This document shows positions 20,511-44,860 of a stretch of 64,000 nucleotides of DNA, piece by piece. Source of the stretch: Chlorokybus atmophyticus (Eukaryota > Plantae > Mesostigma and Chlorokybus algae); contig RHPI01000140.1 of the NCBI GenBank assembly GCA_009103225.1, forward strand, positions 62,001 to 126,000, written 5' to 3'. The translations under genes were made by a program, and so were the position numbers. The stretch's first letter is position 1; each line of letters begins with the position of its first letter. A model generated the notes under the pieces. That model saw only the letters and a program-made list of their open reading frames with translations. It was not told where the DNA came from and ran no database searches.

Positions 20511-21197
20511 GGCGGAGTGCGAAGGGTTAGTTACTAGACTGTGTGAATTTGTTTTGGAGGTTTGACTGGCATAGACGGACACATACACTTTTTGGTACGA
20601 ATCACTGCGTGTAACGGCTTGGTGTGTATTGAATTGCCCTGTAGCAGACAAATGCACATATCAGATGACTGCCTGCAACGGGGCTCTGTTAAATTTCTCG
20701 AGCACACTATGAAACACAGCAGATCAAACCAGGGCATGTGGTGGATTTTCAGCAGAGGGGGAAAAACAAAAGTTCAACCGCAGCTGCTCCACCACAAGTA
20801 CGTGTATGCATGCAATGCAGCAGTGGGTTGCAGAGGAGTGCAAGGCAAGGTGACAAGGGCACATGGCAACAACCTGCAGCAACCGGGTGCAAGTGACTCC
20901 AGTGGCCCAATAGCAGTTGAGTAGGTACAAGGCTGTGGTTTGCTGCCCCCATGCATACAACACAATTGATTAGATGCTTGCAGGTTGCCAGCACTGCAGC
21001 GATAGCAGCATGCTCAGTAAGCCTGCTACCCCAGAGGTGTGTCAAGCAGTCTCTAACCAACGGTCCTCGTGCAACCAATGGAACCCTGCTGAGTCACTTA
21101 AGTAGCGGTTACAATGAGAGCAATGCGGCTGCATGCGTGCCGCATTGCTTTCAGTGCAACCCTTAGACACGAATACGCAGCATGTAGTGGACTCATG

Positions 21198-24100
21198 CTA
21201 GCTAGCTGGTCTAAACATTGAGCGCATATTCTCGTACGCGTAGTATGCCACTAGTGCACTGGGCACGAGTTTGACAAGGTTGGGTATGGCACCTCTGTAG
21301 TACCCGAGGATGCCTTCCTCTCGCCACACGTGCTTGGCAACAGCTACCGCGCTGGCATGCGCCCACACCCTGTTGCCAACAACAGCCCCTGCCTGCATGC
21401 GGTGCCGGATGGTGTCAAGCGGGTACACTGCAAGCTGTGCAAGGGCGCTGGCGAGGAGGGCTGCGGCGGTTAGGGCCTCACGCGTGGGGCGTCCACTGCC
21501 ATCGTTGAGGCGTGGAAGCAGCGGGCGCAGCACCTCGTATGTGCAGTAATGTACCGCATACATCGGTGCTGCACCCAACAGCGTGGGACCCAAGCCTCTC
21601 CACATGCCGGCTTTGCGCAACACCGATAGCGTGCTGGTTGATACGGCAACGCGTGTCCTAGCTGTGTCGAGTGGATATGTTGCAATGGTTGCAATTGTGC
21701 CTGCGAGGGCGCCTGCGGCTGCAGCTTGGATTGCGGGGAGTCTTTCTCTGTCTAAGTGCTTCGGGGCGGTAGCAAAATGTGCGCCCGTAGCAGCCTCGTA
21801 TATGACAAGCTGGAGTGCAGCTGCGGGCAACACGCGCAGCATGTTAACACCATTGCCTCTGTACAGACCCGTCAGCAGCCTGTCGGCCCTTATTGCAGCC
21901 AGTGCTGAGCGCAACGCCTTGCCTTTTCTGACCTGCAAGACCCAAACAAATCACATGATGTTAGCGCGCTGGAACTATGCTCACAGACAACACCCGAGCA
22001 CGCAAACAACCTGCAGAAGAAGTCTGACACGCTCGACAGGTGCAACAGCAGTGGCTGCTGCGACACTGGCGAGGGACACGGATGCCACATGCCACGCAGG
22101 TAGAGCAGCACGCAGATGCTCCACCATAACAAACGCTGCTGCGGGCTGGTCGGCGCTGGTTGGCACAGACTCCAGTAGCGTGCCCACCGCGCTAAGAGTC
22201 AGATCTGACATGCGCCCCACATTCTTGGCAAAAAGGCGCGGTAGCAGCTCACCCTAACCAGAAAGACAACATCAGTGAGTGCAGAGGACACAACTGAAAT
22301 AATGTCTCACAAGTGAGTCCCATGCAGAGTTAGTCTCACTATGCCATGCCATAACATGCCTCAGAGTGTTCTGACCGGCTGAGCCTTCTGCTTGAACTGT
22401 GTGTAGGACAGCAGCCTATCGTGTGGGCGGCCAAAGAGCATGCGCATGCAGTACAAGCGCTCCCTCTCATCCTCCCAATAAGGTGCCATGACAGCGTCAA
22501 ATGAAGGCGCGTCAATAAATCCTTTGTTGGTGCGGTCTGCGAGTTGGAATGCTATCTGGTAGTGCGAATCGGTGTGATTCATCAGGGTGTCAAACCTAGT
22601 AAATTCCATAAATGAGATGAGGGCTTTGCTGGGATCCCTGTTGGAAGCAGCCAACTTTGAAGCCATGTCAATGATAACATCATCTCGTGCTTCTCTTCCA
22701 CTGCCTCTGAGGAAGGATCTGAAGTCGGCAACAGTCATGTACCGTTCACCAGTGGTGCCATCAGTAAAGGAGGCATTCGCATTGAATATCTTATGAAGAG
22801 TTGTACGGCTGACATGAGCACTGCGATAAACACCGTGATGGAATGCTTCTCCGCTGATAGCCCACATGCGCGTGTCCCGCTTGGCAGTTACAGTTGCTCC
22901 CCGCGGCGTGTCAAACATGAGCGCAAGCTCTCCAAAGCTCTCACCATCACGAAGGGTTGTGACGAGAGTAAAACCGTTATCGCCATCAGAGGGGTGGTGT
23001 ACAGTCATAGCAACTTCTCCAGATGCCACCACATAAAAGTTGTCGCCAACATCACCCTGTTGAAATAAAGTCTCCCCAGCACGCAACGACACCGGAAAGA
23101 AAGCCCCGCTCAACTGTCTCAACTCGGCATGCAACATGCCTCTAAACAAGAAGTGTTCAGCGAGGTAACCCGCCAGCTGTTCCTGCTCCCACTCTCTCAG
23201 CTCACCATCATGCCCATCATCTGCACAGGTTGTGTGACCAATAGTTGCAAGCCAAAACCTTGCATGCGCAAGCCAAAACCTTGCATGCGCGTGCAGCCTC
23301 TGACCTGGCTGGGGTGACGATGTGCGTGTCTGCTTGGCCAACTGCTGTTGTGCATGAAGTGCAGTGCTATACGCAGCACGCGGGGCACGCCATAGAAAAA
23401 CATCTGTTCTGTCAGAAGCACGCAAGGTTGCAATGCGCTGCGCTGTCAAACCCACAACGGTACTTGTGCCAAAGACGCCCCCTTCTTCAAGCCTCGCCGC
23501 CACACTCAAACGCTGCCCAGGTAGACTGTCACTTTCGTCCACGACCAGCCGTTCCACAGTGCCCGACTCAACCACATACATGGCATCACCATAGTCACCT
23601 TCGTGAAAGACAACCCCGCCCTTTGGTACAATAAAAGGCCGAAAGGAGTCTATGAGCTGTTCCCTTAGCTTGTCCTCGCGTATGCGAGCCCAGACTATGG
23701 TGTGGGACAGCGCACGTGCAACCAACTCGCGAGCAGCGCCATGCGGTGGCTGATCAAGGCTACCACTGTGAATGCTTTTGCTATGAACACCACTCTTGTC
23801 CTTGGGACCACCACGCACATATTCCTCATCGCCTAGGCGGGCAGAGCCGAGGAGGTGCAGGTTGCTTGGCTGCTGCTGGGAGGACCAGTCTTTGGGCACG
23901 TATCCCGATGATGCAGGAAAGGAACCGAGTAGTCCCAATGCTTGGTATGCAGCTGCAGTTAGCTCGCTGCAGAACACTGCACTCAAGTCTTCCTCTGAGT
24001 CAAAAGCAGACGGACTGCAGGACGCAAGCAGGGCATCGATTGCTGCCAGCTCTGCTGCAGTTGTGTCGCGCTCGGTTTGCAATGAGAGGCGCTGTAAGCG

Positions 24101-25217
24101 AGTCAGCGTGCGCTCGCCAAGAGCTGCATCAAGTGACGCAAGCTGTGAACACGCCAAAGGCCATAATGTGGGTGCTGCACTGCCAACAAGCTAAAGCAAA
24201 GTTGATGAGGCATGTGCTCCACTGCCCACCAAGATACCTGCTCTGCGAGGCCAAGCCGCTGTGCAGTGAGCCGCTCGCGACGCTTCTTTGCAGGAGGATC
24301 TGTTGTCACCAAACATTAGCACTTTAAATGCATTTGTACGGTTACGTAGTGCTGGAGTTTTCATGCATTGCGGCTGCTTGCCATGCGTGTTGTTATACAA
24401 CGTATTTATCCACTACAAGCAGTCAAGACGTGCTGCTGTTTTGCCAGGAGTGATGAGCACATGCACATGCACCTCAATTGCATTGGAGACGCCTAGACTT
24501 ACCAACTGCAGCGCGAACGAGAGACAGCATATTGCGTTCATAGGGGACACCAACTACCGCCTTCTCAAATGCCAGTAGCCTTGCACGAAGTGCTGGTGTG
24601 CGCACCTGCGTGTCAATGTTTCGCCTCAACACGTACTTGAACATGCAAGACTTGAAGGGTCTGTTGTAGTGCGCAACTTGGATTGCATGCATGGCATCCA
24701 CATTGGCGTCAATGCAAGCATTACCGCATGCATTGCCTCCAAGTGGATGGTAAAGAGGCATGCATTCAGGACCAAAAGTTACCGCTGACAATCTGCGTAT
24801 GGCAACAGCATTGCTGCGTGTGCGAGCGAGGCGGTCGCTGAGGGGGTAGCTGGTGACGCCGTTGAGATTGGCCTCCAGCAGCCGGAGCTCCCCAGGGCCA
24901 GGTCCAGCGACCACAACGCCGACATGATCCCACTCGGAGTTGGAGAAAGCCTTGGATGCGGCGCAGATGAGTGCTCCGTACACGCTCATGCGCAAGCAGG
25001 CCCTGGAGAACAGCACTATGTCACCGCTGTCCAAACCAGGGGGCACAATGTAGGAGGATGAAGGAGAGGAAGATGAGGTATCTTCCTCAATTTCGCCAGC
25101 AATCTTCTCAGAATTTGAACCCTCCTCGGCAGCCGCCACCGGCACCGGCGGCGGCATTGCAGCCCACAACAACAACGACAATGACAGTGACAATGACAAT
25201 GACTCGTCAACAAGCAT
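21198..25217 (-). CDS. Multidomain fusion: permuted NlpC/P60 (YiiX/YebB-like) amidase + 2 cNMP-binding domains + Aralar/citrin-like EF-hands + SLC25 mitochondrial carrier (~1086 aa)
   Basis: Seven exons (25217-24783, 24605-24503, 24299-24238, 24142-23305, 23220-22376, 22253-22011, 21932-21198) with GT-AG ends sum to 3261 nt in one frame. Motifs: GDIVLF...WDHVGVVV...LLEA and FCSEL; VFHEGDYGDAMYVVESG and FQQGDVGDNFYVVASG...FGELALMFDTPRGATV; LISFMEF...YQIAFQLADRTNKG; PVERVR, PLDTAR, PLDTIR, LYRGNGVNMLRVLP. The start codon could instead be 25157. Confidence 0.82.
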
Positions 25218-25235
25218 GCTACTGACCACTTTGAG

Positions 25236-25244
25236 TTAGGGTTT
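25236..25244. promoter_or_regulatory. Telo-box (TTAGGGTTT) in a short divergent promoter
   Basis: Exact reverse complement of AAACCCTAA, ~20 bp upstream of the putative ATG of the carrier-fusion gene. Confidence 0.45.
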
Positions 25245-25387
25245 GGAGTTTCTGATCCGAGTCGACAGCAAGGTTGTATGGTGCTGCTGACTGAATCCGG
25301 ATCACGGTACGTGACGCCATATCGGCGGCGACGTCTGCGGCGGTGGTAGTGGTGTGGCCAGGGGTATAGTGTAGGGTAGGAGGCGTA

Positions 25388-25774
25388 ATGGCGCGGCAGG
25401 AGATGCCTTGGGACGCGCTGGTGGTGGAGATCAAGCGGCGGGCGACGGTGGCGTGGATGGCCGCGGCGCAGCGGCGACTGAGGGCTTCTGCGGAGGCTGC
25501 GGCCCGGACCGCTGCGGCGGCGGACTCCCTGCGCTACAAGCTGCCTTACATGTACAGTGTGCTCGACGCCTCCACCGCCAGCTCCCCACTTGAGAACAGC
25601 GTGCCTGCCGATCGCATGCAGATGTACAGTGAGCCCACCGTCGAGCACCACCACTCCGTTGACCCGGCCAGGCGGCGGCACCACTTCCGCAATCACCAGC
25701 TGGGCAGACGGGCGGTGCTGATCGCCAACGTTGCGCTCTTCACCACGCTGTTCTGGCTCACGCCGCACTTCTAG
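25388..25774 (+). CDS. Small intronless protein (128 aa) with a C-terminal hydrophobic segment, unknown function
   Basis: ATGG context, GC3-rich codons like neighbouring genes, C-terminal RRAVLIANVALFTTLFWLTPHF*. No family recognised. Confidence 0.6.
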   Translation: MARQEMPWDALVVEIKRRATVAWMAAAQRRLRASAEAAARTAAAADSLRYKLPYMYSVLDASTASSPLENSVPADRMQMYSEPTVEHHHSVDPARRRHHFRNHQLGRRAVLIANVALFTTLFWLTPHF

Positions 25775-26714
25775 TGGAGTGAAGTGCTGCGAAACAATTT
25801 TGTATATACCTCTGCTGTATGCGTCCATGGTTTTGCTGGCAAGGAGGGTTTCCTGTCCGCAGCGCAGCGCTGCTATGGAGGAAAGCCGCCCCATGGCCAT
25901 CTTTTTCTTCTTTGCTTCCTTGCGCAAGTAGAAAGGTAGTTTAGCAGCAACGGGCTGTCTGCGAGCACTTAGCGTACAGTGCGGCAAAGTGGTTGACTGT
26001 GCAGTACAGCATGTACTGCTATCTTTCTGCTTACGTGGTGTGTTTTCAATTGCTTACCCAAGCAGGTCTGTGTGTTATCTGTATGGAGCAGTCGCTGACT
26101 CTATGTGGTGGCGTTGTATACGGATTAAGCTGAAAGGAAGGTCGACCAATGCAGCGGGCCTCTATTTGTCTGTCTGCAGTAGTATCATGTGCGCGTTCAG
26201 TTCTGTGCTATGATGTGCTAAACTGCAATACACACCCGCAATCTGCGATGCTGTTGTCATGTACAGCACTAGGATGAAAATTTGCAAACATGCACAACTA
26301 TGTGAACATGTACTTGTGCGCGTGCACACAGTAGGAATATCTCACTGTGCAACGAACAACTGTTGCATCCACGTCGTACATGTGCACCAGGCATCATCCA
26401 CGCCAACTCTTACAGGCAGACATCCGCCCAAAAACACAACGTGCAGCATACAACCTTCACCATTGGTCAGGCACACAAACTAGCAAACCAGCAACTAGTT
26501 GGCTGCTGAGAAGCAACTTGCTGTGCCATGCACCACTGCCGCAGCGGCCAACACACCTGACAAGAATAACTATACACAAAAGTTCAGTCCTAACAGCTGT
26601 ACAAAGCCAACAAGAAGTTGACCAAAAGAACAGCTTAACCTACTCAGCTTGAAGCTGAACACCCGCTTAGTGCAAGCCTCCCAAAGCTCCTAGAAGCATA
26701 CCATTGTGAGAAAC

Positions 26715-33749: not shown

Positions 33750-40860
<7,111 letters not shown>

Positions 40861-42623: not shown

Positions 42624-44860
<2,237 letters not shown>

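Follow-up and report, generated by a model that had tools for sequence, protein, structure and literature searches.

A predicted mitochondrial carrier fused to a cyclic-nucleotide-binding tandem and a papain-like C92 domain in Chlorokybus atmophyticus, a member of a conserved and uncharacterised family

A 64,000-nucleotide (nt) stretch of the genome of the early-diverging streptophyte alga Chlorokybus atmophyticus (GenBank assembly GCA_009103225.1, contig RHPI01000140.1, positions 62,001 to 126,000 of the forward strand), here called the window and used for all coordinates below, contains a minus-strand gene at 21198-25217 that joins a papain-like Peptidase_C92 domain, two cyclic nucleotide monophosphate (cNMP)-binding domains, a region of EF-hand-like motifs and a three-repeat mitochondrial carrier in one frame of 1086 codons. 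Judged by its sequence, the encoded protein is a member of the mitochondrial carrier family (SLC25, PF00153), and it is an orthologue within a conserved, uncharacterised family that spans streptophyte algae, red algae, oomycetes, a rhizarian and Euglena. Our best reading, to which we give a probability of roughly 0.6, is that of an APC-like carrier equipped with a cNMP sensor resembling that of the protein kinase A regulatory subunits (PKA-R) and with a probably active, lipid-directed C92 enzyme, in which control by Ca2+ has probably been lost. We found no studied carrier with a built-in cyclic-nucleotide sensor or catalytic domain, while each of the modules is itself of a known kind.

A listing of open reading frames (ORFs) over 20800-25600 returned four long open stretches in differing frames on the minus strand, and Pfam scans of these stretches taken singly recovered Peptidase_C92 (weakly), cNMP_binding twice and the three repeats of Mito_carr. 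Transcript evidence came from assembled contigs of four Chlorokybus RNA runs mapped onto 20600-25800. A single contig (run X1, 3486 nt) covers 20924-25186 in seven blocks and joins all seven exons, and all six of the introns that it implies are bounded by GT..AG on the minus strand. Translation of the exons gives the 1086-codon open frame when intron 3 is taken as 24143-24237, and from residue 21 onwards, the start methionine aside, the product is identical letter for letter to the public model Chrsp387S00874 (P0001, Chlat1, EukProt/JGI, 1066 residues). The first in-frame ATG lies at 25217-25215, while the public model begins at the second ATG, at 25157, which yields its 1066 residues. The original prediction, made from the DNA letters, had described seven GT-AG exons with a frame of about 1086 codons and the domain order amidase, cNMP-A, cNMP-B, EF-hands, carrier; the RNA contig and the exon translation bear out the former, with intron 3 placed as above, and the Pfam matches follow the latter, with three carrier repeats and a region that is EF-like. 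The parts of the gene are as follows.

Exon 1, 24783-25217, minus strand: acidic low-complexity N-terminus and first half of the C92 domain (RNA contig block 24781-25186; Pfam).
Exon 2, 24503-24605, minus strand: C92 segment with the oxyanion residue Tyr167 (RNA junctions).
Exon 3, 24238-24299 (62 nt), minus strand: start of the helical-hairpin insert of the C92 domain, DPPAKKRRERLTAQRLGLAEQ (RNA junctions).
Segment of 19 nt, 24124-24142, minus strand: exonic in the in-frame model, removed in the sole RNA contig.
Rest of exon 4, 23305-24123, minus strand: helical hairpin, C-terminal half of the C92 domain, linker and cNMP-A.
Intron 4, 23221-23304 (84 nt), minus strand: removed in RNA, read through by the ORF scans.
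Exon 5, 22376-23220, minus strand: cNMP-B, then four EF-hand-like helix-loop-helix motifs.
Exon 6, 22011-22253, minus strand: conserved linker helix (LLPRLF...) and carrier helix 1 with PVERVR.
Exon 7, 21198-21932, minus strand: remainder of carrier repeat 1, repeats 2 and 3, and the TAG stop at 21200-21198.
3' untranslated region, 20924-21197, minus strand: as far as the RNA contig reaches.
Introns besides intron 3, minus strand, from RNA contig junctions: 21933-22010, 22254-22375, 23221-23304, 24300-24502 and 24606-24782.

The architecture recurs in other organisms. A word-based homologue search with the central 609-residue ORF piece retrieved only P0001 itself and generic cNMP proteins; the family was found by an exhaustive HMMER search with the central ORF followed by Pfam scans, and a word search with the full-length protein added further members. 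The combination of C92, two cNMP domains (with or without EF-hand matches) and three Mito_carr repeats is present in at least about 16 clusters at 50% identity, and includes the following proteins.

Mesostigma viride: 1388 residues.
Cyanidioschyzon merolae: BAM83499.1, 1222 residues, 36% identity over 97% of the query, E 1.5e-168.
Cyanidium caldarium: 1198 residues.
Galdieria yellowstonensis: 1094 residues.
Rhodosorus marinus: 1083 residues.
Lagenidium giganteum: an oomycete.
Achlya hypogyna: an oomycete.
Phytophthora fragariae, P. rubi and P. cinnamomi: oomycetes.
Papus ankaliazontas: a rhizarian.
Euglena gracilis: a 5'-partial transcript.

In addition, a cluster of 66 members in the ESM Atlas has the full architecture, with Oomycota commonest among them, and the nearest C92 folds in AlphaFold DB belong to R7Q7H8 (1196 residues) and to the Rhodosorus protein. 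Relatives that lack the C92 domain also exist: cNMP and carrier clusters of this kind in the ESM Atlas are commonest in diatoms and in chlorophytes, and P0097 and P0210 combine cNMP, EF and carrier regions. All names carried by the members are automatic, among them 'hypothetical', 'Cyclic nucleotide-binding domain-containing protein', 'Mitochondrial Carrier (MC) Family' and KEGG Orthology (KO) terms, and BAM83499.1 is labelled 'similar to mitochondrial calcium-dependent solute carrier'. A maximum-likelihood tree places Chlorokybus and Mesostigma as sisters (100/100) next to the red-algal group with the oomycetes apart, which fits an old and mostly vertical inheritance as far as the sequences tell; the long-branch rows of the tree (Papus, Euglena and metagenomic sequences) are unreliable. 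The searched literature, outside whose coverage many subscription papers lie, contained no description of this architecture or of any member by accession. Thus, the earlier statement that no characterised carrier has such a combination holds within that coverage, all members being uncharacterised. The fusion itself is upheld as conserved in distant eukaryotes; nevertheless, it is not a one-off, and its members have long been public under automatic names. The value of the finding lies in the family more than in the single, somewhat eroded Chlorokybus copy.

These data also bear on the suspicion that a gene model had wrongly merged a neighbouring amidase/cNMP gene with an EF-hand carrier gene. 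The long ORF does end at the TGA at 22361-22363, and in a plain ORF scan the two halves appear as separate ORFs. However, this TGA lies inside the removed intron 22254-22375, so transcripts do not end there as the original prediction had allowed for; one RNA contig splices 22376 to 22253 and thereby carries the amidase/cNMP and carrier parts together, and the same colinear architecture recurs in more than 15 independently predicted proteins as well as in transcriptome sequences from distant taxa. A merging artefact is therefore effectively excluded, and we attach almost no credence to it.

The third intron requires separate consideration. The original prediction, the in-frame model and the public model all remove 24143-24237 (95 nt; acceptor AG at 24144-24143, exon 4 starting at 24142), which agrees with the frame and with the colinearity of the orthologues, whereas the RNA contig removes 24124-24237 (114 nt; acceptor AG at 24125-24124, exon 4 starting at 24123). 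Joined as in the contig, with the acceptor 19 nt downstream, the exons run into a frameshift past exon 3 and a stop after 206 residues. The contig in question is the sole one spanning intron 3, and the in-frame junction was seen in none of the assembled contigs of the four RNA runs, which lose minor splice variants, so that a junction missing there is not evidence of absence. On the other side, exon 3 and the 19 nt encode DPPAKKRRERLTAQRLGLAEQLASLDAAL, which aligns without gaps to the orthologue motif DPxxKQERERLHALL..K..QL.EI.REL, and because of this alignment the 1086-residue form is, by sequence comparison, the conserved coding form. Besides, about 880 codons past the shift point stay open over four further exons and keep the catalytic Cys, the cNMP-B cassette and the three carrier signatures, which argues for selection acting on the long frame.

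It might be supposed that splicing keeps the Chlorokybus gene largely silent, or that the gene is in decay, its main mRNA giving a 206-residue fragment without the catalytic Cys. The frameshifted mRNA would probably be a target of nonsense-mediated decay, and the full-length protein would be rare or conditional. This agrees with the frameshifting junction in the only contig over intron 3 and the lack of any contig with the in-frame one, and with the decayed EF-hand, the deletion in the carrier and the long branch described below. Nevertheless, some 880 open codons with intact functional residues would not be expected if the long frame were free of selection, exon 3 with its 19 nt aligns gap-free to a conserved hairpin of the orthologues, and contig assembly drops minor variants. 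We consider this explanation improbable, and retain the 1086-residue protein as the object of the following analysis, while the frameshifting acceptor raises the question whether unproductive splicing controls the Chlorokybus protein. A further model, in which exon 3 is skipped and the acceptor at 24123 used, gives an in-frame product of 1059 residues; it was rejected, exon 3 encoding the family-conserved motif DPxxKQERERL. The neighbouring intron 4 is in frame and free of stops and contains a 23-nt direct tandem duplication (gcgcatgcaaggttttggcttgc twice); retention of this intron would keep the frame and lengthen the linker between the cNMP domains by 28 residues.

In the full protein, Peptidase_C92 scored 29.9 bits against a curated cut-off of 27, and the orthologues reached up to 45.7 bits. 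A phmmer search of the N-terminal 300 residues against PDB sequences returned noise only, and a family profile reached YiiX only at E 0.011, so the assignment was settled by a fold search. For this, the region was modelled with AlphaFold2, with twelve orthologues as input (predicted local distance difference test, pLDDT, 80), and the only significant Foldseek matches of the model in the PDB were 3KW0 (Bacillus cereus BcPPNE) and 2IF6 (Escherichia coli YiiX), with probability 1.00. The permuted YaeF/YiiX family is represented by these two structures, and the catalytic set of YiiX consists of Cys128, His49, Glu64 and Tyr115 (Xu et al., 2011; PMC3142127). Profile and family alignments match C258, H98, E115 and Y167 of the Chlorokybus protein with these residues, in the permuted order His-Glu-Tyr-Cys.

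24926-24924, minus strand, exon 1: His98 (WDHVG).
24875-24873, minus strand, exon 1: Glu115 (LLEA).
24542-24540, minus strand, exon 2: Tyr167 (VPYE), oxyanion residue, aligned with YiiX Tyr115.
23971-23969, minus strand, exon 4: Cys258 (FCSEL).

The permuted NlpC/P60 catalytic pair proposed earlier is thus recovered as part of a conserved four-residue set on a YiiX/BcPPNE fold, and the positions given for the His codon (24924-24926) and the Cys codon (23969-23971) prove exact. According to the family alignment, the His/Glu/Tyr/Cys set is kept in every member that has a C92 domain. The alignment and the AlphaFold2 model also reveal an insertion between the catalytic Tyr and Cys: a stretch spanned by 13 residues in YiiX is occupied in the family by a conserved helical hairpin of some 70 residues. 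For permuted NlpC/P60 enzymes, it has been argued that the S1 pocket is of a lipid type and that the proteins associate with membranes (Xu et al., 2011; PMC3142127). Since the catalytic set is complete, and in view of this argument and of recurrent fusions to PH/PX and transporter domains, the C92 domain is probably active as a thiol amidase or acyltransferase on a lipid-type substrate.

As regards these fusions, AlphaFold DB cluster matches revealed that protist C92 domains (oomycetes, alveolates, ciliates and haptophytes) recur joined to PH, PX and SPX modules, and also to sugar-phosphate-transporter and EamA transporter domains. The recurrence of C92 with transporters therefore makes their fusion a wider, unexplored theme. 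In addition, PF3D7_1121500, a C92-domain protein of Plasmodium, appears among the listed candidates for mitochondrial proteins (PMC8550323), and may be a second hint of eukaryotic C92 enzymes acting at mitochondria.

The two cNMP_binding (PF00027) stretches were detected in the full protein at 4.8e-31, and the best Swiss-Prot structural matches of residues 295-603 of the full-length model in Foldseek were PKA regulatory subunits, in agreement with the earlier description of a tandem typical of PKA-R. The phosphate-binding cassette of cNMP-B is canonical (FGELALMFDTPRGATV, 22936-22889), and it is canonical almost family-wide in the form FGE[LA][SA]L....[PR]R[GAS][AS]T. The cassette of cNMP-A (FGTSTVV...QRIATL, 23473-23423) keeps the Arg, but Thr replaces the ribose-binding Glu; across the family, this Arg is likewise kept, while oomycetes alone retain the Glu that follows FG. 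Thus, of the two cNMP sensors originally proposed, both domains are present by Pfam, but only cNMP-B has a canonical cassette.

Following cNMP-B, the full-length AlphaFold2 model contains four EF-hand-like helix-loop-helix motifs. All Pfam EF-hand models remained below threshold in the Chlorokybus protein (15-18 bits against cut-offs of 25-30), and the best EF-like loop, DRTNKGFIDAPS at 22537-22502, carries Lys at position 5 and Ser at position 12 and so lacks the acidic ligand at position 12. The 'EF-hand array' of the original prediction accordingly shrinks to an EF-hand-like region with no canonical loop. Elsewhere in the family, the counterpart of DRTNKGFIDAPS, the third loop (EF3), is canonical in red algae and metagenomic kin, for instance DRNNSGFIDAEE, and Pfam EF-hand models pass their cut-offs there; it is degenerate in Mesostigma (DEANRGYISSSD) and not alignable in oomycetes. 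As judged from the loop sequences, Chlorokybus and Mesostigma have thus probably lost the control by Ca2+, the one EF-hand with a canonical loop in red algae having decayed in both. A profile of the EF-like region matched 9K6M best in the PDB (2e-25), followed by the N-domains of Aralar/citrin (3e-21; 4P5X/4P5W) and MICU1/2 (4e-13). The entry 9K6M, the best solved sequence relative of the region, is a 371-residue protein that carries the name 'EF-hand domain-containing protein'. Ahead of the carrier, a linker-helix motif, ILPxxFxxDxxxLxxHM, is conserved in the family. In APC structures, an amphipathic helix docks on the EF-hand lobe, and by analogy we infer that the linker helix is placed in the same way.

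The carrier domain itself gave three Mito_carr stretches in the full protein (4.7e-42), and in the AlphaFold2 model it consists of six long helices and short matrix helices. The matrix-network signature PX[DE]XX[KR] is present on helices 1, 3 and 5, at the following positions.

22040-22023, minus strand, exon 6: PVERVR, helix 1.
21674-21657, minus strand, exon 7: PLDTAR, repeat 2.
21422-21405, minus strand, exon 7: PLDTIR, repeat 3.

Of the cytoplasmic network [FY][DE]XX[KR], YEVLR and YENMR are present, and both salt-bridge networks are, like the carrier signatures, largely retained across the family. Several members bear the automatic JGI KO name SLC25A23/24/25/41. Because of these names and of an APC-like structural match, the substrate is probably adenine nucleotide and phosphate, by analogy with APC and ADNT; the carrier contact points R / G[VA] / K are presumably like those of ADNT1 and APC, a likeness that serves as a lead only.

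Several observations, together with the intron 3 junction seen in the RNA, weigh against our reading. The structural match itself is distant, as the best Swiss-Prot matches of residues 581-1063 were Arabidopsis APC1-3 and SLC25A23/24 at only 20-23% identity, and by sequence the carrier profile has the ADP/ATP carrier as its closest solved relative. To our knowledge, no structure of an APC carrier domain has been solved. A word-based search with the carrier domain and two Atlas feature searches did not resolve the carrier subfamily. The helix 2 element of the cytoplasmic network reads YEAAT, without the basic residue, and, compared with the orthologues, repeat 2 has lost about 16 residues from its matrix loop and helix, and repeat 1 about 4 residues. 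No other member of the family has a carrier as eroded as that of Chlorokybus, which also sits on a long branch. Finally, the full-length AlphaFold2 model (pLDDT 76, predicted template modelling score 0.44) is confident for the domains, but its inter-domain arrangement is not trustworthy.

How such a protein might work can be proposed from the topology of carriers, both termini of which lie on the intermembrane-space side, as in AAC, APC and AGC. The N-terminal region of about 790 residues would then face the intermembrane space or cytosol and be reachable by cytosolic cyclic AMP or cyclic GMP (cAMP/cGMP), and it may control access to, or cycling of, the carrier, by analogy with APC/SCaMC and AGC. 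The carrier would exchange adenine nucleotide and phosphate in the manner of APC/ADNT, while the C92 enzyme would act on a lipid-like substrate at the membrane surface. Since cNMP-B is the only intact sensor in Chlorokybus, it would be the effective one, and the carrier is expected to be controlled by cAMP/cGMP rather than by Ca2+. The idea of a transporter gated by both messengers, as put forward originally, thus survives for cNMP, but misfits for Ca2+, given the non-canonical EF loops and the decay here of the red-algal EF-hand.

The roles of enzyme and carrier could also be reversed, such that the protein is a cNMP-regulated C92 lipid amidase or acyltransferase, comparable to proteins that fuse a cyclic nucleotide-binding (CNB) domain to patatin, such as NTE, with the enzyme as output and the carrier as anchor. 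The carrier would then tether the enzyme to the organelle membrane or couple it to the conformational state of the carrier. This would suit the observation that no other functional residues of the family are conserved as uniformly as the C92 His/Glu/Tyr/Cys set, whereas sensors come and go, and that in Chlorokybus the carrier is eroded with the C92 residues intact. CNB-patatin (lipid hydrolase) fusions are also common among the cNMP matches, eukaryotic C92 domains are repeatedly fused to membrane-targeting PH/PX and to transporter domains (sugar-phosphate transporter, EamA), and lipid-type S1 pockets with membrane association were argued by Xu et al. (2011; PMC3142127). However, the family-wide retention of most carrier signatures and salt-bridge networks is that of a working transporter, and the existence of relatives with cNMP, EF and carrier regions but no C92 domain means that the sensor-carrier pair can stand alone. 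We regard an enzyme-centred function as unlikely, though it deserves to be kept in view, and continue to favour a regulated APC-like carrier.

A wider reading extends this to the whole family, as a set of organelle carriers in which cAMP/cGMP would bind the transporter directly and gate adenine-nucleotide/phosphate exchange, the C92 domain would modify a lipid or acylated partner, and lineages would have swapped their sensors: red algae would combine Ca2+ with cNMP, oomycetes would use two cNMP sites, and Chlorokybus and Mesostigma a single one. We hold this picture tentatively, as a possibility that may well fail. If true, it would provide a direct, kinase-independent route from cAMP/cGMP to mitochondrial metabolite supply, with a built-in C92 thiol enzyme modifying a membrane lipid or acylated partner within the same switch. 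Since lineages differ in whether they have kept the Ca2+ site, cNMP-A or cNMP-B, the family amounts to a natural experiment on how sensors are gained and lost, and it gives the enigmatic YiiX/C92 enzymes a fixed cellular context. Some of the organisms that carry it lend themselves to experimental tests, among them the genetically tractable alga Cyanidioschyzon merolae and the crop-pathogenic Phytophthora species.

Two features of the surroundings were recorded besides. A plus-strand neighbour stands head-to-head with the carrier gene; its more abundant RNA contig starts at about 25367 with an ATG at 25388 (region 25367-25800), and its predicted product begins MARQEMPWDALVVEIKRR. As this ATG lies only about 170 nt from the first ATG of the carrier gene at 25217, the head-to-head arrangement suggests a short bidirectional promoter between the two genes. 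Further along, the window contains two near-perfect dinucleotide arrays, (GA)849 at 37722-39420 and (TC)845 at 42931-44621, which are inverted, lie about 3.5 kb apart and account for the extreme GC and AT skews at 38-44 kb. They may represent a genuine pair of inverted microsatellites on either side of an element, or else an artefact of the assembly.

Among known systems, the regulated mitochondrial carriers APC/SCaMC and Aralar/citrin sense Ca2+ through N-terminal EF-hands. With APC/SCaMC (SLC25A23/24/25, Arabidopsis APC1-3), the Chlorokybus protein shares the order of an EF-type region, a linker helix and a three-repeat carrier, but adds two cNMP domains and a C92 enzyme upstream. Canonical Ca2+-binding EF-hands such as those of APC are absent from the Chlorokybus protein, whereas the red-algal orthologues exceed the Pfam cut-offs for EF-hands, and the EF region of the family resembles Aralar and MICU by sequence rather than the calmodulin-like domain of APC. 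With Aralar/citrin (SLC25A12/13) and MICU1/2, the EF-like region has in common the motif ASV..G..YMT..DF and the way in which the first four helix-loop-helix motifs are laid out; however, there are four motifs here against eight, and the homology covers only residues ~20-159 of Aralar. Aralar binds Ca2+ at EF2, whereas the canonical Ca2+ position of the red-algal members is EF3. In addition, the Chlorokybus protein ends with carrier helix 6 and lacks the C-terminal helix of Aralar, and its carrier domain has no specific likeness to AGC.

The two consecutive cNMP domains are shared with the PKA regulatory subunits, and the cNMP-B cassette FGELAL....PRGATV closely resembles that of PKA-R. The likeness is limited to the CNB tandem, as neither an RIIa docking domain nor any other PKA-R-specific Pfam match was found; no kinase partner is implied, and the CNB module is instead joined covalently to a transporter and an enzyme. 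The C92 domain agrees with the YaeF/YiiX enzymes YiiX and BcPPNE in fold, in the permuted four-residue set and in a Pfam score over the cut-off, but differs in the inserted hairpin of about 70 residues and in being embedded in a membrane protein. We know of no substrate established for the bacterial YiiX/C92 enzymes. Further relatives are the C92-less fusions, commonest in diatoms and in chlorophytes and including P0097 and P0210, likewise uncharacterised, in which cNMP domains, with or without EF-hands, precede Mito_carr. By analogy with these systems, we surmise that the Chlorokybus protein would work like a regulated SLC25 carrier of the APC/AGC type.

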